Counted from the stretch's first letter, positions 33,766-52,680 are shown. The stretch: 64,000 nt of DNA from Phaeosaccion multiseriatum (GCA_965112735.1 OZ218953.1:868001-932000), one strand, 5' to 3'. The notes: generated from the letters alone by a model not told the origin. Numbers and translations are program-made.

Positions 33766-34814
33766 AAGACAACTCTCACCTATTCCCGGGCCCCACAATG
33801 ACGTCACAGGCGGGCACGTCCCCCACCCCCTCGGCCATGGCGGCAATGGCCTGCGCCCCCCCTACACACAGGAACGCGTCCGCCCCGGCCACGTATGCGG
33901 CTGCCAGAGTGGTCGGAGCAGGCCGAGGGGAAGCTACTACAACAGTTGGTACACCGGCCACGCGCGCTGTGATGGCGGTCATGAGTACTGAGGAGGGGAG
34001 GGGGTAGCGCCCCCCGGGGGCGTAGCAGCCGGCGGTGGCGACGGGGGCAATGGTCTGGCCTGCCTTGCCCCCCGGGATGGGGATCTCCACCTCTGTGACA
34101 CTGTTGCGCTGCGCCTGGTGTGGGGTGTGGGGGTAGGGGGTGAGGGTGTTGGGGAGGAGGGTGGGGGGCGGGGCAAGGCAAGAGAGCACCGCAACGAGGA
34201 GGCAGACAGGGGTGGGAGGCTGGTGTTGTCAGTATTCTATGTATGACAGAGACCTAGGAAAGCAACAACACAAGCGCTAGAAGATGGCCCACCATTTAAT
34301 GTGGATAAAATAGATCCCGCCCCCCTCCCTTCTCTGTCTCCGCCTTCGTTTGCTGTCCTCTAGTAGCGGGGACACATCTCCCACAATTGGGCCAAGAGCA
34401 TGTCGACACTCTAACATAGCCACCAGTATCGCTGCGCACGACACATGAATGCCTGCCTGCACCCCCCGCCCCTCCCGCCCGCCCCTCCCTCGCTGGCTCG
34501 CCGTTCTCGCTCACCTCAGCAAACGTCTTAATCCGCTGTGCAGTCCTCTCTAGAAGCTCCTGCTCCCCCTTGTCCAGCCCCTCGAACGTGCTCTTCAACA
34601 CCTCCTTGGACACGGTGTAGCTGTCGGTCTCGGCCTTTAGGTCGCCGAGCTTGCATGCCTGCCGCTTCAGGCCAACCTCCCCGTGTTCCCGCACGTCCTG
34701 CACAATAACCTTCGCCTGCTCCAGAGCCTTGGGACACACCGGGTCCACGTGGGTACCGTGCACCTTCGAAGCCTCGAGGATGCGGAGCACAGGCTCTTCC
34801 GCGCTGGGGGCCAT
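31643..34814 (-). CDS. hisD: Histidinol dehydrogenase (about 7 exons)
   Basis: [28 protein letters not shown]; [19 protein letters not shown]|[15 protein letters not shown]|[17 protein letters not shown]; IAPEHLEI; [21 protein letters not shown]|GGLSV; [13 protein letters not shown]. Confidence 0.97.
31999..32160 (+). repeat. ~66-bp tandem repeat (about 2.4 copies) in a hisD intron
   Basis: tggagctcaagtatatgtcagtgaagcgttcagtcccacacaagcaagtgccaatgaaggg recurs at 32003 and 32070, and partially at 32135. Confidence 0.85.
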
Positions 34815-35278
34815 TGTTCTCCCCTTTTTCTTGTGTTGCTTGTCCTCCCTTGTTCTCCTTCTTCTCCTCCCCTTGCCCTGCGTAATCTTTCAGACTCCTT
34901 CGAGCTGAAGAGCTGCTGCTGCTGCTGCTTGCTGCTGTTTGAGCAATCCGCGCCCCCCCCCACAAGAATCGATCCGTGAGGTGGCCTGGCGACTGTGGAT
35001 TACCAATGACCCCTGGACTTGAAAAAATCAGCACAGACTTGTCAGGAGGAGAGGCGCACTTTTATAGTGTCGACCTGTCCCTCCTTCCCCCTCCTCTAAA
35101 AGGAGGTCAACGCTGCTTAAATAACCACAACTGCTACATTCCAGCAGTAGTATTGGCTTAGTGAAGGATTTCTCATGGCAGGAAGGTGGCAGGGCTGGTA
35201 GTAGCAGCAGCAGTCAAGCAAAGAGAGGTACACATCAAACATTTCAAACCATGACACCACCAGCAGCAGCAGAGACAA

Positions 35279-38200
35279 ATGGAGGAGAATGAAGAAGCTG
35301 TAGCGGGGCAGCACAAAAGGATGGAACAGAACCACCTTTGTGACAGTCCTGAAGAGATTTCTGATTATCGATTTCTGGCGCACAGGGCTCTGAGAATACG
35401 AGTGGAAAGGCCGCAGGAGCGCACGACGACAATGACAGTGCCAGTGATTGGGACGACGAGACTTGGACGCAAGCCGGTGCTCTGGCAGATGCAGCCGCTG
35501 CGGCGGCACAACCAGCGACCGCTTCGAAAACTGGCACTCAAGCGAGAGTGGAGGCTGAGCTTGCAACAATCGCCGCAGCACAAGAGGAGAGGCGGAAAGC
35601 AACAATTGCAGGCAGCAAGGCAGGACTTGCTCAACCAGAAGGCGACTTTAGAAGATGCTTACAAAACTGGAGGAGGACGAGGCCGGCCCTCGAAGGGTAT
35701 AAGCGAGAAGAAGCGGTTGATTGCTGCAGCTATAAAAGGAATTGATGAGGATTTCCTGCTCCCAGCGGAGCAGGAAGAGAAGCGAAAGAAGGAGATGGAG
35801 GAGAGGAAGAAGAAGGGCTGTGACATGTCTTCGAGCGCAGACAGGGTAGATGGTGCAAGTGGTGACCACTTCGTAGGGTTTTCTTCGCCGCCCCTTGGTC
35901 GCACGTCTAAGCGGTACGTTCTCAATTATCGCCTCTTCGCCGCCCTTTCTGTACATACCTTGACACACTTTCTTGCCCCTGTTGCTCTCGCCCCCTTTCT
36001 ACATCTTTTCTTTGTGCTAACAGGGGTGAGAACGACAAGGATGAGGACGAGGAGGATGGTAATACGGGCGAGGAGGGGGGCGGTTGTGGTGGGGGAGGGT
36101 TTGGGACGAAGAATAGACCACCAGCGCAGACTGAGTTCATCAAGGTAGCACTCCAGGCGGCAAAGGATCAAGAGAAAGGGTTGCCTGCTTGGCAAACTCC
36201 CTACTTCAGGGCCTCGACGCCAAGCCGCCAGTCTGAAGTGGGGGGGGGTACGCCCAACGTGACGTGTATGTCCACCTCTTCCACAACCTTGGAGAGGACC
36301 ATCGACAGCCTCTTTGCGCATGGCATACCTCGTCAAAGTGTGTACAAGCTAAAGGATGGACGTCGCCGCAGCGGGCTGTGTATGTCACCAGCCTCGAGGA
36401 CAACTTTTTCATGGTGGGGACAAGGCATCGGTGTACAGAGCGATTGGAGGAGAAGAAACGGGTGAAAGCTGAGTACAACGAGGCGGAGAAGAGGAAGGAA
36501 ACATTGCAAGAGCAGGTTCGTGTGCTTCGGTTGTGTCTCATTTGCGCTACTCTCTGGGGCTTTTGATGAAGACGCCTCGCCTCTCTTCTTCGCCCTCCTT
36601 CCTTGTCCCCACCCCTGTTCAGATTGCCGCTCAGAAGAAAGCCGTTAGCGAGTACTCGACCTCCTTCTACTCCTACGACCCACGCGTCACCACAGCGTGT
36701 AAGGAGAACGTGTGCTTCCAGTGGGTGACTGCAGAGCTGCCTGGAGGATCAGCCGTGGGAGCAGGGGGAGCAACAGCAGGAGTAGGAGTAGTACGTGCTG
36801 GTTCTGCTGCTGCTGCTGGAGGAGGAGGAGGAGGACGAGGACGAGGAGCTGCTGCTGCTGGAGGAGGACGAGGAGGGGAAAGGGCAGCAGCAGCAGAAGT
36901 AGGACCACCGCCGGCACCAGCAGCCGCAGCACTGTGGCCTGCAATGGGAGGATCAGGGGCAGGACCGGCGGCTGGAGGATAGGGGGCAGGAGCAGCTGTA
37001 GCACCTGCAGACTCTGCTGCTGCAGAGGGTGGTGTCGCTCTCGGGGGGCGGAGGTGAGAGAACCCGCGAGACAGAGCTACGGAAGAGGAGGGAGGCCGAG
37101 AAAAGGAGAAGAACAGAGGCAGGCGCGGAGGGGAGGGAGAGGGCAAAGCTCCAGAAAAGGGCAGCGCGGCAAAGGGAAAGGGAAAGGTTACAGCAGGCTA
37201 AGCAGGGCCCTTCAGGGTGACTCTTACCTTTCTGTGTACGTAGTAATGGAAATAGTAATGGAAGAAGGGGAGGAGCGAGCAGCACCGAGGAGGAGGAGGA
37301 GGAGAAGGAGGAGGAGGAGGAGGAGGAAGAGGAGGAGGAGGAGGAGGAGGAGCTGCAGCAGCAGCACCAGCAGCAGCACCAGCAGCAGCTGCAGCCGCGC
37401 ACTGTGGCCGGCAACGGGAGAAAAAAAGAAGCAAGAGGAAGGCGCGAATAAACAGTTTCAGTTTCCTTTTTTTTCGTTTTTTTTTTTAACTTGTCGTCAC
37501 TGGACTATTATCATTACGAGCGCTCCACCTCTAATAAAGGAAGGCAAGAGCCCCCGCCTTATGCAGCGACGTGGATTGCGATTGGTAGTGTCCCATTACT
37601 TGCACAAGGTGCCTCTGTTTGGCTGCTGAACGGCGAGCGTGGCTGAGTGAGGCCCAGCATGCATGATCTGGCGCAAAAGGGATAATCCGATAATCCAGAA
37701 GGAGGACGCGGACAAGGAGGAGGGGCTCACGGACAACTGCGAGCTCAATGCCGACGAGGTGAGAGGAGAGAGAAGAGGCACACCGGCTTACGTATCATCG
37801 GGCATCTCTGCCTCTCCTTTTCAACCAACCACCAATGCTCAGTGCTTCTCTGATCTCTTTTGTGGGCCGGTTGTGGCTCTGACTGTGGCGGCGCTAACGA
37901 TTGGCTGTGATGTGTGGCTGCTTCCTGTTGCTTGCTGTCCTGTCCTCTTCTGTGCAAACAGCTTGGTTGGCGCACGTTTGCATGGATCATATAATGCAAA
38001 CAGACAGTTGGCCTTGTTTCCGGCCGGCCTTTCTGCTGGCAAGCACAAACTGGAGCTTGCCGGCGTCGTGGACAAGGGGGGTGTGGCCTTTATGCGCAAG
38101 CGGTACAGCGTCTGCCGTCGCAAATATTACCACGATGCAGAGCATGATCGCCGAGCAGCAGGGAGGAGGAGGAGGCATGTGGCTGCAATTTCATGCCGGG

Positions 38201-39610
38201 GCCGGGCATGGGAGGCCCCACGGGAGTGCCCCCCCCCTGGGATGGGCCCACCGCGGGCATGATGATAACTTTCCCTTTCCCGCCAGGTGAGTGAGTGCGT
38301 GAGTGAGTGCGTGAGTGAGTGAGTGAGTGAGTGAGTGAGTGACGGAGGGAGGGAGGGAGGGCGTGAGCGAGGGAGGGAGTGAATGAGAGACTGAGAGAGG
38401 GAGTGAGTGAGTGAGGGAGTGCGTGAATGAGTGGGTGAATGAGTGGGTGAATGAGTGAGCGAGTGAGTGGGTGAATGAGTGGGTGACCAACACGGAAGAG
38501 CGGGCGGTCGCAGAAGAGGAGAGAAGGGAAGAGAAGGGCGGATGGAAGGAGGCTGATCCTTCACTCCTTCGCCCGCCTTTTGTCTCTTTTGTCCCCTCCC
38601 ATGTCCCCCTCTCACTCCTTTTGCTTGCTCTGGCGAGGCAGCATTTGGGTGTTCCTGCCGAACCTTTTTGGCCTGAAATTGAGTTTCAGCTCATGAGGGG
38701 AAAAGAAATCTTTAGAACCCTATTACACTCAGCTGCCTGGGAGCTGCGGGGAGTGAAAAAACAGGCTATGGCCCGGGTGCTGGCACCCTCCCTTCAGCAG
38801 CAGCACTCCTACGAAGAGAGGTGAGCGAGAGGTTTGAGAGGTTGGGTAGGAGGAAAAGAGGGATGAGTAGCGGCCCGGGCAGGAGGAACAACAACTAGTA
38901 GCTACGCAACACCCTCTCTCCCGTTTGCGTCATTCTCCCCAACGACAAACTTACCCCTCCTGTGTGCTGTGGCACCTGCCTCAGTAACAGCCATGAACGG
39001 CGCAAGAGAGGAGAGAGAACTCAAGGCATGGAAACGTGCCTTCGGAGTCCTCCAGGCATGCGAACCATCCTTCCGACTCATCCTTTCATGGCCTGAAGCC
39101 TACGAGGCAGCTGCCGGACTCTGCCACGAACTTTTTCCACACAAAGCAGACCTTTGTGTGGAGGGCCAGGCTCACGCGCAAACGAGAATAAGGTGAGGAG
39201 CGAGAATGGGACAAAGAGAGGGCGGGGGGAGAGAGTGGTGAGAGCAGCAGCACACACTGGACACGCATCTCTGCTGCGCAGGGGAGAAGGGGAAAGAAGA
39301 CTTGAACTGCACTCTCTTGTTTCCCTTCCTGCCTGCGTGTTCGGGAAAGGGAAACTTGCCTCTCATCCCCTCTGCCTACCCTCTCGCCCCGCTGTGCTTT
39401 GGCAGCTGCCTCAGTGACAACACGTACGGCCTAAGAGAGGGAGAGAGGATGGGACAGGAGGCTTCCTCCGAACTGTTTGCCAGGTGGAGTTCATTGTTCT
39501 GCGAACTCTTCGACTCATATATGGTCCACATCGTGCACCTCGAGTTAGCCAAACCCAAGTTGTTGGGTTTGGCAGGTGTGCTACGCTCCAACGAACCATG
39601 TCAGGAAAAG
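35279..39610 (+). pseudogene. Degenerate transposase-like region (DUF6729-like N-terminus plus eroded MULE-like catalytic core), spliced and frameshifted
   Basis: Segments RDVYVHLFH..PLCAWH..KGWTSPQRAVYVTSLEDNFFMVGTRHRC, SFYSYDPRV, LFPAGLS..VVDK..FMR, QAMARVLAPSLQQQHSY, TAMN and HAQTRI resemble, in order, the motifs I recall for DUF6729-associated transposases. Catalytic Asp positions appear substituted and several frameshifts are needed. Confidence 0.4.
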
Positions 39611-40070
39611 GTGAGTAGTGAGTGTGTTTCTTTCTTCGTGTGAAAGGGGGGGCTTTTCTTGGCAGGGGAAGAAAGGGAGGAGAGGGGAGCGAGTCTTCCC
39701 TAGTGAGAGGGACTTCAGGGGGGAGAGAGAGAGAGAGTGAGCGGAGGGGGAGGGAGGGGCAACGCGGAAGGAGGAAAGTAAGGTAGTGAATGAGAGGCTG
39801 GGCCCTGATTCATGTATAATCCGTGGAGAGGAAGGTCCATCTCGTCCCGAGTTTGAGCAGTGAGGGAGGGAGGGGAAGGGATGGGATGGGACTTCTGTCG
39901 CCAGCTGTGACAGAAACGGACCTCCATCCATCTCTCTCACATCATTTCTTCCACATTTGCCCTTGCTCCCTCGTTTTGTCCTCCTTCTCGCAACAAAACC
40001 ACTCACCTGTATGTCCCACTGACTCTTTGCTTTCGTGCCTCGTCTGTCCTTTCGTCTTTGGTCCGGCGCA

Positions 40071-40565
40071 GCACTTGGACTCGCGGTTGGACTTGGACTT
40101 GGACCCAAACCGAGCAGGAGGGGCAGCGGCACCCGCGGCCAACAGCAGTAGCAGAGCGATTGGTAGCATTGGAAGCCTCGGAGGTATCGGCAGTCTCAGC
40201 GGTTCAACGGATAGTCTGAGTCAAGAGCAGGCTGGAGTGGGTATGGGCAGTGACGGTGGTGGTGGTGGTGGAGGAGGTTGTGGTGGTGGGGGAAGGGGGC
40301 GAGGAAGAGGAGGAGGGGGGGGGGAGGGGGCGAGGAAGAGCAGGAGGAGGAGGAGGAGGAGGAGGAGGAGGAGGAGGAGGAGGAGGAGGAGGAGGAGGAG
40401 CCACGCCCAGCGATGGCTCCGCGTCAGGCTCTCCGTCTGGACCGCCGGGTGAGGACAAAGGAGGGTGGATAGTTGTATCGTACGGAGGACGAAAGCACCG
40501 GCATGGAGCAAAGCCAGGCAGAGGGCCGGAGGGGCTGCCACAGACCGCCACAGGAGGAGGAGGAG

Positions 40566-40601
<36 letters not shown>

Positions 40602-43600
40602 GAGGAGGAGGGGGGAGACAAACTTCTGGCGAGAGCTCACAGCCCGTCAGAGTCTCCGCATCGAGGAAAAGAGCCCGCGGAGCAGCAGCAGGGGCAGCAG
40701 CAGCAGGAGGAGGAGGAGGAGGAGGAGGAGGAGGGAGGGGACAGGCATATTCGGACCGCCCATATCCTCCTCTTCCTCAGCTATGGGAGTGGATCCCCGT
40801 AGAAGCAGGAGGAGGAGGAGGAGGAGGAGGAGGAGGAGGAGGGGGAAGAGGAGGAGGGGGGAGAGGAGAAAGAGGAGGAGGAGGAGGAGGAGGAGGAGGA
40901 GGAGGAGGAAGAGGAGCAGGAGCAGGAGGAGGAGGAAGAGGAGGAGGACGAGGAGGAGGACGAGGAAAGGGGAGGTCACATCCAGCCGTAGTCTCCCCGC
41001 CGAGAAAGAGATCTCGAGGAGCAGCAGCAGCAGCAGCAGCAGCAGGAGGAGGAGGAGGAGGGGCAGGAGGGGGAGGAGGAGGAGGAGGAGGAGGCGGAGG
41101 AGGAGGAAGAGGAGCAGGAAAGGGGAGGTCACATTCCGTCATAGTCTCGCCACCGAGAAAGAGATCTCGAGGAGGAGCAGCAGCAGCAGCAGCAGGAGGA
41201 GGAGGAGGGGGAAGAGGAGGAGGAGGAGGAGGAGGAGGAGGAGGAGGAGGAGGAGGAGGAGGAGGAGGAGGAGGAGGAGGACGAAGGGGAGGAGGAGGAG
41301 GAGGAGAGGGAGGAGGAGGAGGAGGAGGAGGAGGAGGAGGAGGAGGAGGAGGAGGAGGAGGAGGAGGAGGAGGAAGAGGCGGAGGAGGAGGAGGAGGAGG
41401 AGCAGGAGGAGGAGGAAGAGGAGGAGGCGGAGGAGGAGGAGGAGGAGCAGGAGGAGGAGGAGGAGGACGACGAGGAAGAGGAGGAGGAGGAGGAGGAGGA
41501 GGAGGAGGAGGAGGAGGAGGAGGAGGAGGAGGACGAGGAGGAGGACGAGGAGGAGGACAAGCCTCTGGCGAGAGGTCACCGACCGGCACGCCCTCCCCGG
41601 CGAGAAAAAGACCTCGAGGAGCAGCAGCAGCAGGAGGAGCAGCAGCAGCAGCAGCAGCAGGAGGAGGAGGAAGAGGAAGAGGCGGAGGAAGAGGCGGAGG
41701 AGGGGGGAGAGGAGGAGGAAGAGGAAGAGATGGTGGCAGCAGTGACGAGGACTCTGACACTGAGCAGCAGGGGGAGCGCGGCACGGCGACGGCGAGTCCG
41801 AAGGTGGGGAGTAGGTAGCAGAGAGCTTTATCTTGCTTGCTTCTGTTTCCCTCAAGTAATTGGATATTTTTTTTGTGCTTGCTTTCATCGCTTTCCTCGC
41901 TCTCCCCAACAACAGGAGCCCACCCGCCGATCCACAAGGGTAAGGAAGCGCAAGGCTTTATCCAGCGATTACGAATTCAGCGACGATGGAAGCTCCTCTG
42001 AGGAGTGTGGGGCAACCGATGACGAGGAGTACAAGGGAAAGCAGAGAGGCAGGGGTGGACAGGGCAGCAAGAAGGTGAGAGCTTTTCTCTCTTGGCCTTG
42101 GCCTTGCCAGTATCACACTGAGAGAGTGTGGCTGCGTCCTCCCTGCCTTGCTCGGACCCTTCTAACACCCCTCTCTTCTTGACCCCTTGCTCCCGGTCGT
42201 GTATATACTGCCTCATCATGTGCGTCTTAACAGAAGGGGGAGGAGGACAAGGCAGAGGGGCAGAAGGCAGCTGTGTCGAGGGTAGTCCAGTCCTTCCAGA
42301 ACGTAGTGCCAAACTTCGTTGTGGACGTGGCCCGGCGTTGTCGTCCCTCAGGAGCACGGGCGGAGAGGAGGAAAAGGCAGCAGGTCCATGCTCAAGAAGA
42401 CAGGGCCAGCTTGACTTTCCAATCGGCAGACGCCGGGGGTAAGGTGCAGCTCTTGCGCAACAATTTCAGGTCATGGTGGCGGGCTGAGGAGCGAAACGCT
42501 TGCTATTTTTTGCCATTGATCGGCAAGCTCCGAGCCTTTGTGGTCGATCGTCCCACGGTCCTTGGTAGTGAGCAAGCGGTCATGATTACGGCGGTGCTCG
42601 AGGAGCAGAAGAGGGATGACCACACCGACTCCCAGCAGCAGCAGCAGCAGCAGCAGCAACAGCAACAGCAGCAGCAGCAGCAGCAAGAACACCACTCTTC
42701 GGGGAGAAGCAGTCGTGTAAAGTTCCGCATCTTCCTGATCGGAGACCTCACGGTGCGGGGCGTGGAGCAAGAGGGGGGAGAGGCGCCCATCACTCTGAAG
42801 GATATAAAGTTTCCGGTGGGGGGAGAGCGGGAGGAAAACTTTTCTTGTCTGGGTAAGCAGGAGGCGCCAAAGGCTGCAGCGGCCTTGCTCCAGCGCCTCA
42901 AACGGTCGGACGATTGCTTCGCCCTTGTCGTTAGACGGGAAAGTGGTGAGGGGGAGAAGAAGGGCCATTGCAGGGGTACGCTCCTGTTCAGCGCCCTCCA
43001 CTTGCCCATCGAAGACGTGCACCGGCTCAATGCAGTGGCACCCGACGCCATCACGAAAGAGGGGCCGACTGTGGCGCCGAAAGGGGGGCCGACTGTGGCG
43101 CCTGGCAAGCATTCTGTGAGCCAATTGGCGGATACATGTACGACCATCGCCGTAGCCGGGAAGCCCGACCTCGTGCCCAAGCTCGAGCAGTTGGCTGCGA
43201 AAGTGTTTGAGAAAGCGGTGGAGCGAGGAAAGGCAGGGGGTGAGCGGTTCGGAGCGATTGCTGCCGGCCTGCTCAACACGGAAACCGGCGCTATACTCGT
43301 GTCTGGCAGGCAGGGGCCGTGTAGAGCTCACCCCCAATCGGGTCTCCATGGCATCACCGAGGATGGTGCTCATGCTGAGCCAGATGTCATTTCCAGGGCA
43401 CTGCGGCGGGATGACTGGCATTGCAAGCAGGCGCTCGTGCTGGTTGTGTCCACAGCCCCATGTTATGCGTGCGCCAGATTCATTGTGCAAATTGTGACGG
43501 AGGGTAAGCTGAACATCACCCACGTCATTGCCGGAGAGGCTGAAGCCGTCGTTCGACTGGATGGAGTCGACAGACTGATGGAGACCAACATTCAGGTAGG

Positions 43601-44998
43601 TAGGGTAGTGAGAGAGAGACCCTCGCTCAGCCCACCTCCGCTGCCTTTCTCGCCCTCCAACTCACTCTCCTCCTGTGCTGTGGACTGACGCATGTACATG
43701 TGTGTGTGTGTGTGTCTGAAATGCAGGTGCTTAGAGACGAGGTGTTTTGTGCTAATCTCCTGCCCCGGTACACAGCGACGGCTATCCCCGACACCACCAT
43801 ATCGGCTCACTATGCGGCCGGGGAGGCAGATTGGCGCAGCTCCGCCGAGCTTCCTCTTCTGCTCTTCTCTAGTCCGGAGTGGCAGGAAGGGGGGGCAGGC
43901 GAGAGGCATCTCGAGGGGCCTCTCCGACGCTCGATGCTTCTCGCTCTGGCGGCGGTCGGCATGAATGCAAGAAGAAGCTGGACAGACATGGGCCGAGAGA
44001 AGCAAAAGCGGCTGCGACAGGCAGCGATGAGAGAGGGGGGGCGTGGCGCAGGCTCAGTGCCTCCGCTGTTGCTTGTGGGCTCGGATCTTATGCAGGTCCT
44101 GCTGTCAGAGAAGCAGGGCGGCGGAGAGGGCGGCGCGTCGGAGGGGAGGAGGAATGAAGACGCTGGCGCTGCTGCTGTGAGAGATGCGGCGAGTCAGTCC
44201 CTCCCCCTCCTCAACAGCAATGACGATGTCGTCGGAGGCTTCCAGCCTTGGTTCGACGCCGATCCCGATGTCAGTGCAGGGGTGGTATGTCTTCGACCGT
44301 GGGGGCTTCGTCTGCGGGAGGGACGGCCTTTTCCAGCTTCTTTGGTCCAAGGGGATCTGACACCCCCAAAGCAGGTAGAACTCAAGCTAGAGCAGAGGAG
44401 AGAGAAGAAGACGAAACACTTCTCAAGGCTGGAGCGCAGAACCGAAGAGCAGCGGTGGAAGGACGCGTGCAAGCGAGCTTCCTTCGGCCTTTTCGCTGGA
44501 GACCCACGAAAGGCTGGAGAGAAGGACTTGGCCGGCGCGCAGCGGACTCTCGACGGAGCTCATAAGAGGGGGAAGAGGATGACGGGGGGTCCTGCTTCAG
44601 ATGATGCGGAGGAGAAGAAGAAGAAGGAGGAGGAGGAGGAGGAGGAGGAGGAGGAGGAGGAGGAGGAGGAGGAGGAGGAGGAGGAGGAGGAGGAGGAGGA
44701 GGAGAAGCAGGAGGAGAAGGAGGAGGAGAAGGAGGAGGAGAAGGAGGAAGAAGCGACCTTCCGCGTGAGGGTCGCGAGCATCAAACTCCAGCCCAGCGCA
44801 AGTGTGCAGCGTGTGATCGAGCAGGGGCTTCATTCAAGGGGGCTGGCCGACAAGATTATGAATCGCACGGCACTTTTGGCGGCCGTGCTACCCCTCCTAC
44901 CTCGTTTTGTTTTGGAGGAGGGAGAGAGGGGCATGAGCAGCACGGGCGAGGAGGAGGGAGAGATGGAAGGGCCGGCTCCCTCCCCTACTAGCGACGCT

Positions 44999-45034
<36 letters not shown>

Positions 45035-46337
45035 CAGCAGCAGCCGCCGCAGCAGCAGCAGGAGCAGCAGCAGCAGGAGGAGAAGAAGAAGGGCCCACCG
45101 AGCGACATTTGCAACGACTGGAGGAAGCTGAGAGACGTTTTGTGGGCCTGGAGTCGGGCTCATGAGGCGGCCGGTGAGGAGGACACTGTTGATGATGCCG
45201 AGACTCTCATCCAGTGTGTGCGCGACGTTCTACTCAAACGTGATCCCTCGCTCCTCATCTCCATGGTGAAGGGGACTATCGTGGGCAAGGCGAAGCTCGC
45301 TGCCTTCCTCCCTGCTTTTCGGAGAATGGAGAAGCTTTTGGGTCTCGTGCGCAATGACGAGCTGCCGGAGGGCCAGAAGCGGGGGTTTACCATACACCCG
45401 GGTCAAACCTCCTACAGAGAACTTCTCGATCGATTCGAGACGTGCTTGGGTGTTTTGACGTCAGCCAGGTGCACCGACAGCACCCGACAGCAGGAGCTCA
45501 CAGCATGGGCATTGGAGTGCGTGGGAAAGGATGGAGACAAGAAGGTCATTCCCAACTCTTCAAAGCGGGGCAAGGGGAGGGGGAAGAAGAAGAAGAAGAA
45601 GAAGAAGAGCAAGCAGAAGGAGATAGAAGGGGCGCAACAGGCTGGGCGCACAAAACGAATGCGGGCGGGCTCTAGAAAGACACACGCTCAAGTCCAGGAG
45701 GAGCGGCTGAAGAAATGTGAGAAGCTTGGCACCGAAGTGTGGAAGAGCAGCGTGCGTGCTGTGTGGGGCGACATCGACGCCTTGTTGAGGAGGATACTGG
45801 CCCCGCTCTTCGCCCACGACAAGGAGTTTATGGGCCGAGAGGACAAAGTTGTAGGGGAGTTGAAGGAGCTTCTCGAGTCCGCATCCGAGGAGAACATGGC
45901 ATGGGCAACACTATTCGGATCAGAGTCGGCGAAGGGGCCAGGGAAGGAGGGGGAGAAGTTCCATCGCGACTTTGCCGGGAAGCTATTCTCCCTGCTCATC
46001 TCGGGACGGTATGAACGCTGCAAGCTGGTAAGTCTCCAGTACAGAAGGGGTCAAAACATGCAGCGCCTTGCAGCTGAGCTACAGCTGTATGTGTGTGTGT
46101 GTGTGTGTGTGTGCGTGTGCGTGCGTGCGTGTGTGTGTGTGTGCGTGCGTGCGTGCGTGTGTGTGTGTGCGCGTGCGTACGTGTGTGTGTGCGTGCGTGC
46201 GTGAGTGAATGAGTGCGTGCGTGCGTGCGTGCGTGCGTGTGTGCGTGCGTGTGTGTGTGTGTCTGTCTGTCTGTCTGTGTGTGTGCGTGCGTGCGTGTGT
46301 GTGTGTGCGTGTGTGTGTGTGTGCGTGTGTGTGTGTG

Positions 46338-46384
<47 letters not shown>

Positions 46385-46533
46385 GTGTATGCGTGTGTGA
46401 GTGAGTGCGTGTGTGTGTGTGTGCGTGCGTGTTTGTGTGTGCGCGTGTGCGTGCATGTGTGTGTGTGTGTGCGTGCGTGCGTGTGTGAGTGCGGGCGTGC
46501 GTGCGTGCGGGCGTGCGTGCGTGCGTGCGTACG

Positions 46534-46573
<40 letters not shown>

Positions 46574-49500
46574 TGTGTGTGCGTGTGTGTGTGTGCGTGC
46601 GTGCGTGTGTGAGTGCGGGCGTGTGTGCGTGCGTGCGTGCGTGTGTGAGGGAGTGAGGGAGTGGGTTTCTGTGAGAGTGAGTGAGAGTGCGTGAGTGCGC
46701 GAGTGCGTGCTTGCATGCGTGGGTGCGTGCGTGCGTGAGGGAGTGAGGGGTTCTTTCCTTGCTCCTCCAAAAGCTCATTGCCTGTCTTCCCTTCTTGTCT
46801 CCACCCCGACCCATCTGTCCCGCACGCACACACACACACGCACACACACACGCAGGTGCAAGGGGGGCTCAGTGAGTTGGCGGCGCTGCACCTTGCGCAG
46901 GCCGAGATTGTTCTGTCCTTGACGGATCACTTTACGCGCAAGGTTGGCGCAGTGGGGAGTGAGGAGCGTCGCGGCAAGCAGGGAGGAGCCAAGCTGCCCG
47001 ACAGAAGAACCTTGCTCGCCGATGTTGCCGCCCAGCTCAAGAAGATGGAGGCCTTGAAAGACCTCCATAGGGTTAAGGGTGACGCAGAGACACTGGGCCG
47101 AGATTTTGTGCAGTTCATGGTGCCGACCACTGAGTTTGCTGCAGACCCCAAAAGGAGTAACGAGAAGATTACAGCTGCAGCTGCAAAGGTGGCGTTGCAG
47201 GCGGCTTTCGCTGCGGGTGCCTACGTTGAAGCTTCCAGCAGAAGAATGGACAGGTCAACCTGGGTGGCAGCGGCGGCCTCTGGGGCAGCTGCCTTTTATT
47301 TTTCTCGTCTACAAGGATACCACCCCAGCGCCGAGGACAGGAAACTGGCGATGGCCATGGGGCGGTTGCTGGCACACAAGCTTGAGACAGCTTCTTCTGA
47401 TGCCTTCAAACCAACACCCTTCTCCAACGAGGAGACGACGGAGGACGAGAGAAAGAGTCGGGCGGCGTGGCTCAAAAGAGCGGAAGAGGTGATGCGAGGA
47501 AGCGAGAGTCGGTCCATGCAGCCCGTGATCCAGGCGTTGTTTCTTGTGACACTCTACAGGGAGTGGTACTCGAAGGGAACGCTCAAGGCTGACGATGAGA
47601 ACCTTTCTCGCCTGGTGCTTGAGGCCCTGGCACGCACGGAACCGAGCGGGCCGAGCGGACAATCCCCCGAGTGGACAGCGTTTCTTTGGGCTGCCCTTTA
47701 TCAGCACTTGCGGCAGACCTACGGCCTTCCGAGGATCAAGAAGAAGAGGCTGGGCAGTATGAAGCCCGCCAGCCTTGTCCAGGAGGCGGGGAAGATGGTG
47801 CACGAGGAGGGGAAGAAGGAGGCAGAGAAAGCAGCGTCGTCAAAAGCGGCAAGAGCGGCCTTGAGGTACTCACAGAAGTCTTTGACGTACGAGCTGGGGG
47901 CTCAGCAGACCAACAGCGGACAGGTGCGCTACCGTGCAGCACGAGAGACGAGGAGGGAGGGGCAGGAGGAGGACTTCAAGGTGCGCAGCAGCTGTGAGTA
48001 CCTGGAGGTGAGCTCAGAGTCCGACCCCAACAAGGAGCTGGCGACATCAGAGTGCAGGCTCTCTTATAGGAAGACAGCGCCGCACTCCCCGGACCGGTAT
48101 GTAGACAAGGTGATCGTCAAGCTGCCTACCGACAAGTGCGAGTTCGTTCTGTTGGACCTGACGAAGGTCCAGGACCAACGCAAGCTGCTGCGGCTGCCGG
48201 GCATGGGGCGGGCAGCAGGGGGGAGCCGAGGGGTGGAGCCGAGATGGGTGGCCGTGCGGGCAGATACGCTGAATGGCGAGCCTGTTCCCGGCACCATTCG
48301 GCTCGAGGTTATCTTTAGAGACTATGGCCAACCTCCGCCACCGCCTGCTGTTGGGGTGCAAGAAGGAATCGTGCCAAGGCTAGTCGACTTCCGCCCACCA
48401 GGGTTCAAGGAGGAGAGGGCCTGCTGCGCGCCCGAGGTGAAGGTGACGAGGGAGAAGGTGACGAGGGAGAAGGGGAGGGACAAGCTTGTAGCTCTCCGAG
48501 TTGAACACTCCGAGAAGGCCCGCTCTCTGCCGAAGGTGCCGAAAACGAAGACTCAGCGGAGGAAGAGCGCAGAGGCTGCCGCTCTCCGCAAGAGAATTCG
48601 CGACGCGGACCAGGCGAGGGCGAAGGCGTATGGTGGAGGGCACCGCAAGTGGCGCCCATTACGGGAAGGTGACTTGTCTCGCAGGGCCGGGCTGGGGCCG
48701 AATACCCATTCCGTGCAAGTGCTTGATGTCATGGAGGGCTGTTCCGCAGAGGATGCCACGAGCCTACGCGAGTACTTGGAGAAGCTCACTCCCTGTCAGC
48801 GCTGGGGCGGGGCGGATCCGGGGGTTCGCTCTTTCCTCCATATCTACGACATGGGGAATAACCGCGTGTATCGGGTTGGGCACAAGTTCTCTGCTAACGT
48901 GCGGAAGGTGCAGAAGAAAATCGCCCGCCTGGACGGGGCCATACACGAGGCGAGAGAGGTAAGCAAGGAGCTTAGTAGCGGGAAGGTGACAAGCTACGAA
49001 AGGCAAGGCAGGGGAAAACTGACAGCTCACTCGCTCCGCTCAGCCATGGGAGGAGGCCTCCCCTCCGCCCCTCCTCTCTTGCCCCTACTCTTGACTTGTT
49101 CCCTGGCTGCTGACTGAATCGGCCGCTCCCGCCCTCCTCTCCCTCTCCCTTGCTAGGGCGGCGACACTGCCATCCTCAAGGCGCTGTGCTCTGAGCAAGC
49201 CAAGATACGCCAGCGTTTGAAGCACCATACTTTGGTGCTTCACACAATCGCCATCAGGCTCATCACAGCGACTTTTACCCACTTTGTGTTGCCCCCGGTT
49301 GACGCCAAAGCGTGGGCGAGCCGGAAAGGCCGCTTGAGAGCGGGTCTGCCCAGGGACATGGGGAAGGACATGGCGGCTCTCTCCTTCGGAAAATTTCGAC
49401 AGCGGCTTCGATTGGTGAGTGCTGGCTGGACAGGCAGCCAGGGGAGGAGCATTAGGGAGCCCAAAGCTGTATACGAGGAGGCGACTGCCCTCGCTCCGCC

Positions 49501-50192
49501 TTGCTTGCCTCTTACTAGGCCTACTTGCTGCTCCTTTGCCTCTGCCTCCTCTCGCTCGTCCTCCTCCCTCACCAGGCGGCATCGTCTCCATCCTGCCCTC
49601 TGACGACCCTCTGTGAGCCCAGCGAAGCCTACACCACCAAAACGTGTGGCTCTTGCGGGGCTTACAACGAGGCCGTCGGCGGCAAGAAGCAGTGGGTATG
49701 CCCCACTTGCCACCAGATGCTACTCCGCGACCCCTCAGCCGCCCGGACCATCACTCTGTTGGGGTTGCAGGAGTTCGCAAGGGGCGTGCTTCCATCGTCG
49801 TCCGTGCTGAAGCCACAAGCGAAGGCACGGACACACCAAACCTCCCCAGTACGTCGTGTTGGAAGAAGGCATAAGCAAGTCGCCCGCCCTGCCGAGCACC
49901 TGCGTTCTTGTTCTTGTTTGTGTCTGCCTGCAACAATACCCTTCCCCCCCTTCCCTTCAGCTTTTCTTCTTCACTTGCTCTTGCCTGGGCCGCTTTTTTC
50001 TTGCTTTGCTTTCTTGACTTGTTGCCCTGCCTCACTACCTCGCCTGCCTGCCTGCCTGGCCTCGCTCCGCCCTCTCGCTCGTCCTGCTGTTGCTTTGCTA
50101 GTCGGGGCCACCTGCCGGGGGAGCAGCCGGAGGGCTTCTTGCCCAAGAGGCTGTACAGGCTACTTCGCGATCGGAGCGTAGTCTGTAGGTGA
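40071..50192 (+). CDS. Giant multi-exon protein: Gly/RGG-rich region, unknown domain, Zn-dependent (TadA/CDA-fold) deaminase, then enlarged Fanzor (TnpB-like RuvC + Zn ribbon) RNA-guided nuclease
   Basis: Phase-0 GT-AG exon chain ...41803 | 41916-42074 | 42234-43595 | 43727-46027 | 46856-48958 | 49157-49414 | 49576-~50190 stays in frame without stops. Deaminase HAE (43371-43379) and PCYAC (43458-43472). Ruv[16 protein letters not shown] (Asp 48815), Ruv[22 protein letters not shown] (Glu 49624), CPTC, Ruv[14 protein letters not shown] (Asp 49729). The 5' start and exact last exon are uncertain. Confidence 0.85.
46088..46745 (+). repeat. Long (GT)/(GCGT)n microsatellite within an intron of the Fanzor fusion gene
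   Basis: Directly visible; lies between the GTAAGT donor at 46028 and the CAG acceptor at 46855. Confidence 0.95.
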
Positions 50193-50580
50193 GATGGCTG
50201 CTGCCTGCTGCTCGCTCCCCTGCACCCCCAGCCACGCCAAAGTCATGAACTCTTTCCTAACAACCTGCCCCTCTCCCCGCCCGCCCCCCCCCCGCCCCTC
50301 CGCCCCTGCCCTCTGATTGCTTCCTGCCTCCTGCCTCGGCGATTGCTTTTGCTTCCCGCGATATCTTCCCGCCTCCCGCTCCCGCAATCTCCCGCCTTTG
50401 CCAAAAAATTCCAAATTTCGTTTTCTTCTCCCTTTTTCGGCCGGCGGTCGACGGTATAAAAATGCGCCGACTTGTCAGACGTGAAAGCTCACTTAAAATA
50501 AGCAAATAAGCAAAAGCAATAGCAATAGCCTCAAGATACCCTGTTCTGCAGTTTGCCTCACTCTTCCTGTGAGCAAATGA

Positions 50581-51860
50581 ATGACGCGGAGTCCGTCAAG
50601 GGCCCGGTGTGAAGGCCCACTGCTGCTGCTTCTTCTACTTCTGGTGTCGGTGCCGCCTTCTGCTTGCTTCGCGACGAGCGTGACATCGAAGAGAGCAACC
50701 CAAACAACTCACTACTGTTCCCGCCATCCCGGGGCTGCTCTGCGGAGGCCGGGAAAGGATGTACGGCCTTGTCCGAGAGGGCTAATAGAAGTAGGGAATG
50801 AAGTAGTAGTAGGAGCAGTGGCAGTAGGAGAAAACGCAGCAGGTGCTGCTCCTGGTAACGATGGGGCCGACACACCTCACAACAGACCACTCGCCGTGGT
50901 GACGGGGGCCAACCGAGGTCTGGGCTATGCGCTCTCGGCGGAGCTATTGAGGAGAGGCTGGGATGTGATCCTTGGCTGCAGAGACGAGGCGTCGTGCCGA
51001 GCAGCCGCCGCTGGGCTGAACGTAGTAGTTCTTGAACAGGAGGAGGAAGAGGAGGCGCGGGGTGATGGTGGGAATGCAGGAACATACTGCTCGCCACCAT
51101 CTTCAGCAGCAGCAGGAGTGGCCGGAGGAGGAGGAAGGGAAGCAGGCAGAGAAGGAGTCGGGCGTGTCCGGGTGCATGCGCACAGTCTTGATGTGGCGGA
51201 TTCACGGAGCGTTGCACGGTTTGTGAAGACGGCCCTGGCAATAACAGAGACAACAGCAACACGATCACCATCGGACAGTCGGGCAGCAATGAGCAAGTCC
51301 AGAGCAACGCGCAAGGTGGACCTGCTGGTGAACAATGCAGCGGTGTGCCTTCCCGGAGACAAGTACGACGTTTTAAGTCAGACACTGGCCACCAACTTCT
51401 TCGGCCCTCTAGCGATGATCGAAGCTTGCCTACCTTCGCTGGCAGCAACTGCACCAGGAGGAGCAGCAGAGGCGGCGGCTGAGTCTTCTACATCACCAAT
51501 TGCTGCTGCTATTCCTTATGAAGCATCCCCCCTCTCGTCAAGCAGGCCACAGGGGAAGGAGGAGGAGGAGGAGGAGGAGGAGGAGCAGACACATCAAGGG
51601 CAGGAACGTGGGAAAGTCCACCAACGCCCTCCTCCCCTTGGCGGGGTGGTGTTGAATGTATCTAGCGGCGACGGAGAGCTGTGCTACATGGCTTCGGACT
51701 TGCAGCTTGCCCTGACAGAGACCTCCACGCTGCAGGTAAGGGGGGAGGAGGGGGGAGAGCGAAGGGATGAGGGGGCTCTCTCTCTCTATCAAGACTCGAT
51801 CTTGACTCTACTCGTCTAATCCTTGCCTGTCCCTGCCCCTTTCTCCCGTCTCTCTGTCTC

Positions 51861-51895
<35 letters not shown>

Positions 51896-52680
51896 CTCGT
51901 CTTTCTCTCTTCCTCTCTCTCTCTATCTCTTCCTTCCTCCCTCTCTCCCTCTTTCTCTCCCTTAACTCTCTCTTACTCCCACTCTCTCTCTTCCTCCCTC
52001 TCTCTCTCTCGCTCTTCTATCTCTATCTCCACGCCCCTCCCCCCCCCCTCCCTATCTCTCTCTTCTCTCTCTCTCTCTCTCTTCCCCTCTCTCTCTCTCT
52101 CTCTGCGAAGGGTGTAAAAGACGTGGTAGAGTCTGTTCAGAGTGCGTGCCTTCATCCCCGGTCAGACGAGAGCAGCACAGCTCATACTGCCCAGAGTAAC
52201 AGCAACGGCGCGAAGGAACAAGAAGAGGGCCACCGAGAAATCGCCTTCGGTCCCACCCCTGCCTACAGCTTTTCCAAGGCTGCTCTCAACGCCGCCGTCC
52301 GCGTGCTCGGTCCCGAGCTGCTGGCCGAGAGCGGGGTGCGCTGCATAGCTGTGTGTCCCGGAGACGTGGCAACACGGATGTGCTCCGTGCCTGTGCCGGC
52401 TGGGCTTGGAGTGCAGCTGGAGGAGGAGGAGGAGGAGGAGGAGGAGGAGGAGGAGGAGGAGGAGGAGGAGGAGAGTCATCGAGCTGAGGGGCCAACAGGA
52501 GCAGGAGCAGGAGCAGGAGGGGAAGGGGAGGTGGAGGTACTGACACCCGCCGAGGCCGCCAACCGGGTACTGGACTTGTTGCAGGGAGGAGGAAGTGGAG
52601 GAGGAGGAGGAGGAGGAGGGGGAGGGGATGACTTTGAAACGGGCTGCTTCTACAGAGACGGGCAGCGGATCCCATGGTAA
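50581..52680 (+). CDS. Short-chain dehydrogenase/reductase, carbonyl reductase-like, with signal peptide (2 exons)
   Basis: LAVVTGANRGLGY; HSLDVAD; VDLLVNNAAV; TNFFG; VLNVSSG; catalytic YSFSK; VCPGDVATRM; TGCFYRDGQRIPW. Confidence 0.93.

Follow-up and report, generated by a model that had tools for sequence, protein, structure and literature searches.

In a stretch of 64,000 nucleotides from the GC-rich eukaryote Phaeosaccion multiseriatum (GCA_965112735.1, OZ218953.1:868001-932000; hereafter the window, with all coordinates counted from its first base), a transposon-like element probably carries one large, intron-containing gene, the spliced product of which would combine a nuclease module of the Fanzor2/IS607-TnpB type near its C-terminus with a divergent zinc deaminase in its N-terminal part. 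At the sequence level, the identities of the two domains are established, as are introns 3 and 4 and the borders of the transposon. The union of deaminase and Fanzor in a single polypeptide is probable, while a guided action of the deaminase is a considerably more tentative proposal.

The frame spliced from position 42234, where exon 1 begins and from which all residues are numbered, comprises 2,209 codons in the computed translation and ends with a stop codon at 50179-50181. All five introns are of the GT..AG type and in phase 0 (159, 131, 828, 198, and 161 nt); the donors are, in order, GTGAGA, GTAGGT, GTAAGT, GTAAGC, and GTGAGT and thus GTRAG-like, and the acceptors are CAG or TAG. An earlier reading of the DNA from the sequence alone (the sequence-only reading) had described a frame of more than 2,100 amino acids joined by canonical phase-0 GT-AG introns, which was borne out: its exons translate without stops in the frames proposed, and every motif quoted there was found. 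No open frame in the window is longer than those of the three large exons (485, 866, and 792 codons between stops). None of them contains an in-frame stop, compared with 7 to 13 stops in the other two frames of each, and their GC content by codon position (GC1>GC2<GC3) is similar to the pattern in host genes of the same window, among them FANCL and one for a GMC oxidoreductase. In the last approximately 130 codons (49800-50178), which are CT-rich, this coding signature is lost; the real C-terminus may come soon after the RuvC-III motif, via a further intron or a short tail. Directly upstream of the gene and inside the element, approximately 1.6 kb of GAG/GGA/CAG triplet repeats (40220-41900) are open in three plus-strand and several minus-strand frames and mask the true 5' end of the gene. 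The features of the gene are as follows, all on the plus strand:

41916-42074, plus strand: putative upstream exon with the RVRKRK sequence resembling a nuclear localization signal; open frame with a canonical intron to 42234
42234-43595, plus strand: exon 1 (454 codons), N-terminal region with a polyQ tract, followed by the deaminase core
43164-43595, plus strand: deaminase core with H380-A-E382 (43371-43379) and P409-C410-x-x-C413 (43458-43472)
43596-43726, plus strand: intron 1 (131 nt, GTAGGT..GCAG), beyond which the TadA alignment carries on into exon 2
43727-46027, plus strand: exon 2 (767 codons in one unbroken frame), deaminase tail, linker of about 340 codons ending in polyE, and candidate Fanzor N-terminal motifs
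43727-43762, plus strand: C-terminal strand and helix of the deaminase, aligned to TadA ILADE-CAALL
44768-45139, plus strand: candidate WED strand 1 and REC helix 1 (residues 802-833) and an NW..LRN-like motif (918-925); weak block-profile matches with a polyQ insert between them
46028-46855, plus strand: intron 2 (828 nt, GTAAGT..CGCAG), nearly all GT/GC microsatellite
46856-48958, plus strand: exon 3 (701 codons), unrecognised region followed by RuvC-I
48809-48835, plus strand: RuvC-I, GADPGVRSF, with Asp1875 at 48815-48817
48959-49156, plus strand: intron 3 (198 nt), junction crossed by the homology alignment
49157-49414, plus strand: exon 4 (86 codons), encoding the RuvC-II strand and the helix that follows RuvC-I
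49280-49303, plus strand: RuvC-II strand, VLPPVD, with Pro replacing the canonical Glu
49415-49575, plus strand: intron 4 (161 nt), junction crossed by the homology alignment
49576-50181, plus strand: exon 5, with Glu2025, zinc ribbon, RuvC-III, CT-rich tail, and the stop at 50179
49624-49626, plus strand: relocated catalytic Glu2025, aligned to ApmFz2 E467
49645-49710, plus strand: zinc ribbon CxxC...CxxC (Pfam PF07282)
49726-49731, plus strand: RuvC-III Arg-Asp2060, invariant family column
50182-50445, plus strand: 3' region up to the right end, the expected place of a guide RNA; C/T-rich and unstructured

The two domains and their probable connection

The sequence evidence is solid for residues 1873-2072 as a RuvC domain and zinc ribbon of the Fanzor2/IS607-TnpB type, in which the rearranged triad Asp1875/Glu2025/Asp2060 is intact. 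Exon 5 matched the Pfam family PF07282 (Cas12f1-like TNB zinc ribbon) with 30.9-34 bits, above the cut-off of 26.3, and the NCBIfam models guided_TnpB and IS607_TnpB, so that the profile searches suggested in the sequence-only reading came out in favour of the nuclease. Sequence matches of exon 5 in the PDB were UnCas12m4a (E 6e-8), the mimivirus Fanzor2 L79/ApmFz2 (9b0l, E 1e-4), TranC, and ISDra2 TnpB; no molecule named Fanzor1 was present among these matches up to an E-value of 10. A scan of viral contigs with exon 5 led to a giant-virus locus of the IS607 type (L003). Starting from its TnpB/Fanzor2 protein, 64 relatives were gathered and 36 of them aligned, from which a family hidden Markov model (HMM) was built. 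In the spliced product, residues 1874-2072 correspond to positions 365-552 of the 557 positions of this model (98 bits, E 3e-32), and the match is unbroken over the junctions of exons 3/4 and 4/5. Intronless metagenomic loci (L005, L008, L010, and a second match in L007) likewise aligned as single tblastn segments, from residue 1875 to residues 2069-2072. Because both the HMM match and the intronless relatives align straight across the junctions, introns 3 and 4 are proven by homology to be real.

Asp1875 (in ADPG), Glu2025, and Arg-Asp2060 occupy the invariant columns of the family. Glu2025 lies about 57 residues past the canonical RuvC-II position, resulting in a spacing of 150 residues between Asp and Glu. 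In the rearranged active site of Fanzors, the RuvC-II Glu is replaced by Pro or Gly and compensated by a Glu approximately 45 residues downstream; in ApmFz2, this relocated residue (E467) was found to be essential by mutation (PMC10530073). A site of this kind, with DPG, loss of the RuvC-II Glu, and an alternative Glu before the zinc ribbon, had been recognised from the sequence alone, and the recognition holds with an HMM score of 98 bits and Glu2025 on the column of E467.

Two observations on relatives of the nuclease were made in passing. In the giant-virus contig of L003 (2368-4165), an open reading frame (ORF) for a serine recombinase with a MerR helix-turn-helix (MerR-HTH, MerR-resolvase) overlaps, in a different frame, an open frame of 597 codons, which ends in a Fanzor2 with the motif SEAYTTKTC, identical to that of the window protein. 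The closest relative of the RuvC half (L004, 38% identity over 136 residues) is located on the metagenome contig JACCDY010868080.1, which has 62% GC and a length of 1.1 kb with its 5' end cut off; its source may be a related organism.

The N-terminal domain (about residues 311-466) is accepted, on evidence weaker than that for the nuclease, as a divergent zinc deaminase of the CDA fold belonging to the TadA/dCMP-deaminase group. H380, E382, C410, and C413 of the HAE/PCxxC motif set, which the sequence-only reading had assigned to a zinc deaminase, are all present, and the spacing between the E and the P (26 residues) equals that of E. coli TadA. Residues 341-421 matched Pfam dCMP_cyt_deam_1 with an E-value of 2.1e-5 and 24.8 bits, 0.2 bits below the cut-off of 25; the profile search proposed for this domain was therefore favourable in its E-value and fell short in its score. 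Sister families of the same clan (MafB19-deam, SNAD4, APOBEC2, and OTT_1508) were detected on the same stretch with E-values of 0.001-0.07, and language-model features (Atlas) related it to the dCMP_cyt_deam/MafB19 clusters (0.88). The sequence matches in the PDB were weak (APOBEC2 and TadA, E 0.2-0.4), and so were those in NCBIfam; a tblastn search of phages with the deaminase returned only noise. When E. coli TadA, taken from the K-12 record, was aligned to the spliced product, HAE and PCxxC were matched and a score of 60.5 was obtained, compared with 35.1 +/- 6.9 for shuffled sequences (z about 3.7). Insertions are located before HAE and after the PCxxC helix. A uracil-DNA-glycosylase-like domain following the deaminase was considered as well and rejected (nothing in Pfam; Atlas 0.48 with low recognition).

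The tail of the deaminase encoded by exon 2 lifts the TadA alignment score from 42 to 60.5, a value reached by 3 of 1000 random 40-residue segments of the product and 6 of 1000 shuffles (p 0.003-0.006), and not by read-through of the intron. Because the alignment crosses the junction of exons 1 and 2, the last strand and helix of the deaminase are assigned to exon 2, which makes it very probable that intron 1 is genuine. The sequence-only reading had argued that the intron-split last strand ties the deaminase to exon 2, and the alignment across the junction supports this (p about 0.005). From the deaminase tail to the polyE tract, 344 codons contain no stop, compared with seven in each of the other frames, and the single frame of exon 2 runs on into weak candidate Fanzor N-terminal motifs. 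The deaminase is linked to the RuvC exons solely by the splice of intron 2. The donor of this intron is a perfect GTAAGT, its acceptor is an in-phase CAG, and the two sites coincide exactly with the points at which the coding signal ends and begins again. Furthermore, the coding composition of exons 2 and 3 starts at their acceptors, 69 and 63 codons ahead of any ATG. We infer the splice from 46027 to 46856 and consider it probable that deaminase and Fanzor are part of one polypeptide, in which the deaminase and the RuvC domain would be separated by over 1,300 residues, made up of linker and unrecognised sequence with abundant polyQ, polyE, and polyK.

The transposon and its copies

The surroundings of the gene are best explained by a multi-copy cut-and-paste DNA transposon with one large intron-containing gene. 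The element, approximately 15.4 kb in length, is flanked by the first exon of a histidinol dehydrogenase gene (34299-34889, minus strand) and by a short-chain dehydrogenase gene (50581-52677, plus strand). These flanking host genes diverge, so the element occupies their shared upstream region. It comprises, in addition to the gene:

35036-35045, no strand: left target-site duplication (TSD), 10 bp, GACTTGTCAG; the 10-mer is found at 35036 and 50469 and nowhere else in the window
35053-35075, plus strand: left terminal inverted repeat (TIR), 23 nt; 20 of 23 bases are complementary to 50446-50468
35076-41915, plus strand: left approximately 7 kb of the element, with fragmentary ORFs and long GAG/CAG low-complexity tracts
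50446-50468, minus strand: right TIR, pairing with 35053-35075
50469-50478, no strand: right TSD, GACTTGTCAG, a perfect copy of the left 10-mer

No domain of any kind, transposase and resolvase included, was detected in Pfam scans of 15 ORFs from both strands of the left 7 kb. Variants with 95-99% identity to the window copy are present in the DNA runs. One of these forms has a stop codon at 44447, and in another the region 47974-48454 is replaced, from which it follows that several copies or alleles exist and that some of them are broken. In place of this block (481 nt, exon 3), the second form has dissimilar sequence, and loose ends of 255 nt or more occur on either side. Insertions and deletions in the exons of other copies (+12 and -3 nt) are multiples of three. 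The 22 base differences in exons comprise 19 nonsynonymous and 3 synonymous changes, a ratio that suggests neutral drift of the copies, as is the case for transposon copies in general. The commonest class of differences is A:T>G:C (10 of 22, counted without regard to the direction of change), with no common sequence context; it was considered as a possible footprint of the deaminase and set aside. Within 44447-49158 (exons 2-4), first codon positions account for 14 of the 22 differences (binomial p about 0.003) and, in exon 3, for 12 of 16; the differences are often paired at a distance of 3 nt (47450/47453, 47789/47792, and 47885/47888).

One gene, two genes, or a mosaic

Several results weigh against a single gene for a guided deaminase-nuclease. 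Intron 2 is the only junction without support by homology; it is an 828-nt microsatellite with 4-6 times the length of the other introns, and a Fanzor could in principle be encoded by exons 3-5 alone. The kind of the sequencing runs containing window DNA is undeclared; four of them are DNA-like, with contigs of up to 254 kb in which intron 1 is covered and no splice joints occur. For the deaminase, which scores just under its Pfam cut-off, no relatives were detected in a word-indexed search or in scans of metagenome and viral contigs. In TnpB and Fanzor proteins, the WED/REC half holds the guide RNA (PMC11832414) and the heteroduplex; in the window protein, this half escaped recognition in the profile searches: hhalign gave a probability of 0.1, and block HMMs were without a significant match. 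An exhaustive HMMER search of 1.84 billion cluster representatives returned no relative of exon 3 at an E-value of 0.001. AlphaFold2 (AF2) single-sequence models had predicted local distance difference test (pLDDT) values of 33 for the deaminase and 36 for the region of the WED/REC search and were unusable for a fold search. In the last 300 nt before the right end, the fold was no more stable than that of shuffled sequences (z -0.27), and sliding windows were unstructured. Lastly, purifying selection is not visible among the base differences of the copies.

The sequence-only reading had also placed a TnpB-like N-terminal strand and helix in exon 2. Block matches do fall at this site (residues 802-812) and at residues 918-925; they are individually non-significant, and they occur in the expected order and flank the polyQ insert. 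Both matches at such strength, in this order, and within 150 amino acids were observed in 2 of 3000 local shuffles, in a test chosen post hoc. The location proposed for these elements is consequently retained as a weak candidate, while PF12323 (HTH_OrfB_IS605) was not detected at the strand and helix and hhalign was negative. An alignment to the N-terminal halves of the family with MAFFT was arbitrary and gave no WED/REC assignment. Exon 3 had no match in the word-indexed search. The last 353 residues of exon 3 matched OrfB_IS605 in a protein language model (0.95), which probably reflects RuvC-I, and PDB sequence searches with the unrecognised regions of the product returned polyQ matches only.

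For the guide RNA, which in Fanzors is a structured (omega) RNA that overlaps the 3' end of the gene and extends to the transposon end, no Rfam match was obtained. The sole stable hairpin (49600-49690), which is long and imperfect, lies approximately 780 nt from the right end, within the part of exon 5 that encodes the relocated Glu and the first CxxC (z -4.3 for the 150-nt window; z -3.0 for a 181-nt fold, with 1 of 200 shuffles equally stable). This hairpin may belong to a guide-RNA scaffold or be coincidental.

An alternative to the fusion would be two neighbouring genes on one transposon. A deaminase gene composed of exons 1 and 2 would end by read-through at 46202 in the microsatellite, and the reading frame of a Fanzor gene of its own would begin at a Met of exon 3 or, alternatively, at one beyond codon 70 of exon 2; a cooperation of both proteins would be possible in this case. 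The length and repetitive nature of intron 2, together with its missing homology support, fit this arrangement. Moreover, the 650 residues ahead of RuvC-I in exon 3 would be sufficient for a WED/REC half of its own, and the stretches before the first Met in exons 2 and 3 could be open by chance with a probability of roughly 0.06-0.11 (estimated from stop densities). It is difficult to reconcile with the perfect, in-phase donor and acceptor of intron 2 exactly at the edges of the coding signal and with a coding composition that begins at the acceptors ahead of any ATG. In addition, candidate Fanzor N-terminal motifs occur in exon 2 only and not in exon 3. Two separate genes are thus regarded as rather unlikely. 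The length of intron 2 is itself a multiple of three, and no contig from the four DNA runs assembles through it.

Alternatively, the gene might be a young, functionless mosaic, in which a captured fragment of a Fanzor2 RuvC domain and zinc ribbon was combined with an exonised fragment of a host deaminase. Such a product would have no RNA-guided activity and would lack a working WED/REC half and a guide RNA, and the frame would be open merely because the copy is recent. A WED/REC half undetectable by hhalign, block HMMs, and Pfam is consistent with this view, as are the unstructured 3' RNA, the neutral-looking differences between copies, of which one has the stop at 44447, the many low-complexity inserts in the protein, and the lack of a recognisable transposase in the element. 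However, all catalytic and metal-binding residues of both domains are kept, and 2,209 codons are open over five exons, whereas stops occur in the other frames at a density of roughly 0.02-0.035 per codon. The lengths of the exon insertions and deletions in other copies (+12 and -3 nt) preserve the frame as multiples of three, and in families of active transposons, copies ordinarily differ in a neutral manner. A mosaic of this kind is therefore considered unlikely. A domesticated host gene with Fanzor- and deaminase-derived domains and lost mobility, for which the size of the gene, its many introns, its host-like codon composition, and its location between two host genes might be cited, is extremely improbable in view of the intact inverted ends, the perfect 10-bp duplication, and the several near-identical copies or alleles in the DNA runs.

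Proposed function and comparison with known systems

If deaminase and Fanzor are fused, a mechanism can be outlined by analogy to characterised Fanzors, which recognise DNA by means of an RNA derived from the right end of the element (PMC10432273, PMC10530073). The Fanzor module would bind a guide RNA from the transposon and target DNA, as other Fanzors do that retain their element in the genome. The tethered deaminase would thereby be brought to an unwound, displaced, resected, or cut DNA strand, or to RNA, and would change bases there. Such changes might eliminate the empty target site, sway the outcome of repair, or introduce mutations into competing elements. An enzyme that cuts and deaminates, or one with two activities at different times, would fit the data equally well. 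Editing of the R-loop strand by the deaminase is something that we purely infer, and RNA-guided deamination itself is considered unlikely. The same applies to the more specific proposal of a natural RNA-guided deaminase-nuclease, in which base changes introduced by a guided TadA-like deaminase would accompany or replace cleavage; we put it forward tentatively, as an improbable possibility.

If this proposal were true, base editors would for the first time have a counterpart in nature. Evolution would have reached the base-editor design unaided, and the question would be what a selfish element gains from guided deamination. As a potential engineering scaffold, the protein would offer adaptation to eukaryotes, with introns and tracts resembling nuclear localization signals. 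Even if the two domains act independently, a Fanzor2-type nuclease in a transposon with TIRs and TSDs and with an N-terminal extension of 1,800 residues would widen the range of this family.

To our knowledge, eukaryotes have no RNA-guided DNA nucleases other than Fanzors, and every Fanzor described so far is a stand-alone nuclease. The window protein has RuvC-I DPGVR, the Pro in RuvC-II, the CxxC..CxxC ribbon, and RD in RuvC-III in common with the Fanzor2 protein ApmFz2 (9b0l; PMC11832414, PMC10530073) and with the protein of L003. The relocated Glu is located in a motif, (S/N)E.YT(T/S)KTC, which both of these also possess, and the spacing between Asp and Glu is similar (150 residues in the window protein, 143 in ApmFz2). 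In contrast to Fanzor2, the window protein is four times larger, its WED/REC half is unrecognisable, its gene contains spliceosomal introns, and a deaminase is added.

In IS607-type elements, a serine recombinase TnpA is encoded beside TnpB, and inverted ends or a long target duplication are absent. Whereas Fanzor2 is carried by IS607 elements (PMC10530073; L003 with its recombinase), the element in the window has inverted ends and a 10-bp duplication, and no resolvase was found in it. In this respect, it resembles the eukaryotic TIR transposons that carry Fanzor1 (Bao and Jurka 2013, PMC3627910; PMC10530073), with which it shares a TnpB-like passenger gene in a cut-and-paste transposon. However, exon 5 matches ApmFz2, TnpB, Cas12m, and TranC and no PDB molecule named Fanzor1. 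The deaminase shares with TadA/ADAT2 and the dCMP_cyt_deam_1/MafB19 group the spacing of HAE and PCxxC (26) and the order of beta4, beta5, and the C-terminal helix; in contrast to this group, it is very divergent and located inside a protein of at least 2,200 residues.

In the literature, no natural fusion of a deaminase to Fanzor or TnpB was found; the top full-text matches were engineered fusions only, in agreement with the sequence-only reading, which knew of no characterised natural example. The primary surveys of Fanzor and TnpB (PMC10711439, PMC10530073, PMC10691335, PMC10432273) mention neither a deaminase nor such a fusion. With the engineered base editors, which consist of a deaminase and Cas9, Cas12, IscB, or TnpB, the window protein would, as a fusion, share an N-terminal deaminase tethered to an RNA-guided DNA-binding module. 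The sequence-only reading had gone further and assumed the same architecture, which did not hold: the engineered editors have short linkers and a nuclease that is dead or reduced to a nickase, which allows editing without double-strand breaks, whereas the window protein has an intact RuvC triad and a linker of more than 1,300 residues. Because of the intact triad and the long linker, the analogy between the window protein and the engineered editors is one of domain logic and not of design.

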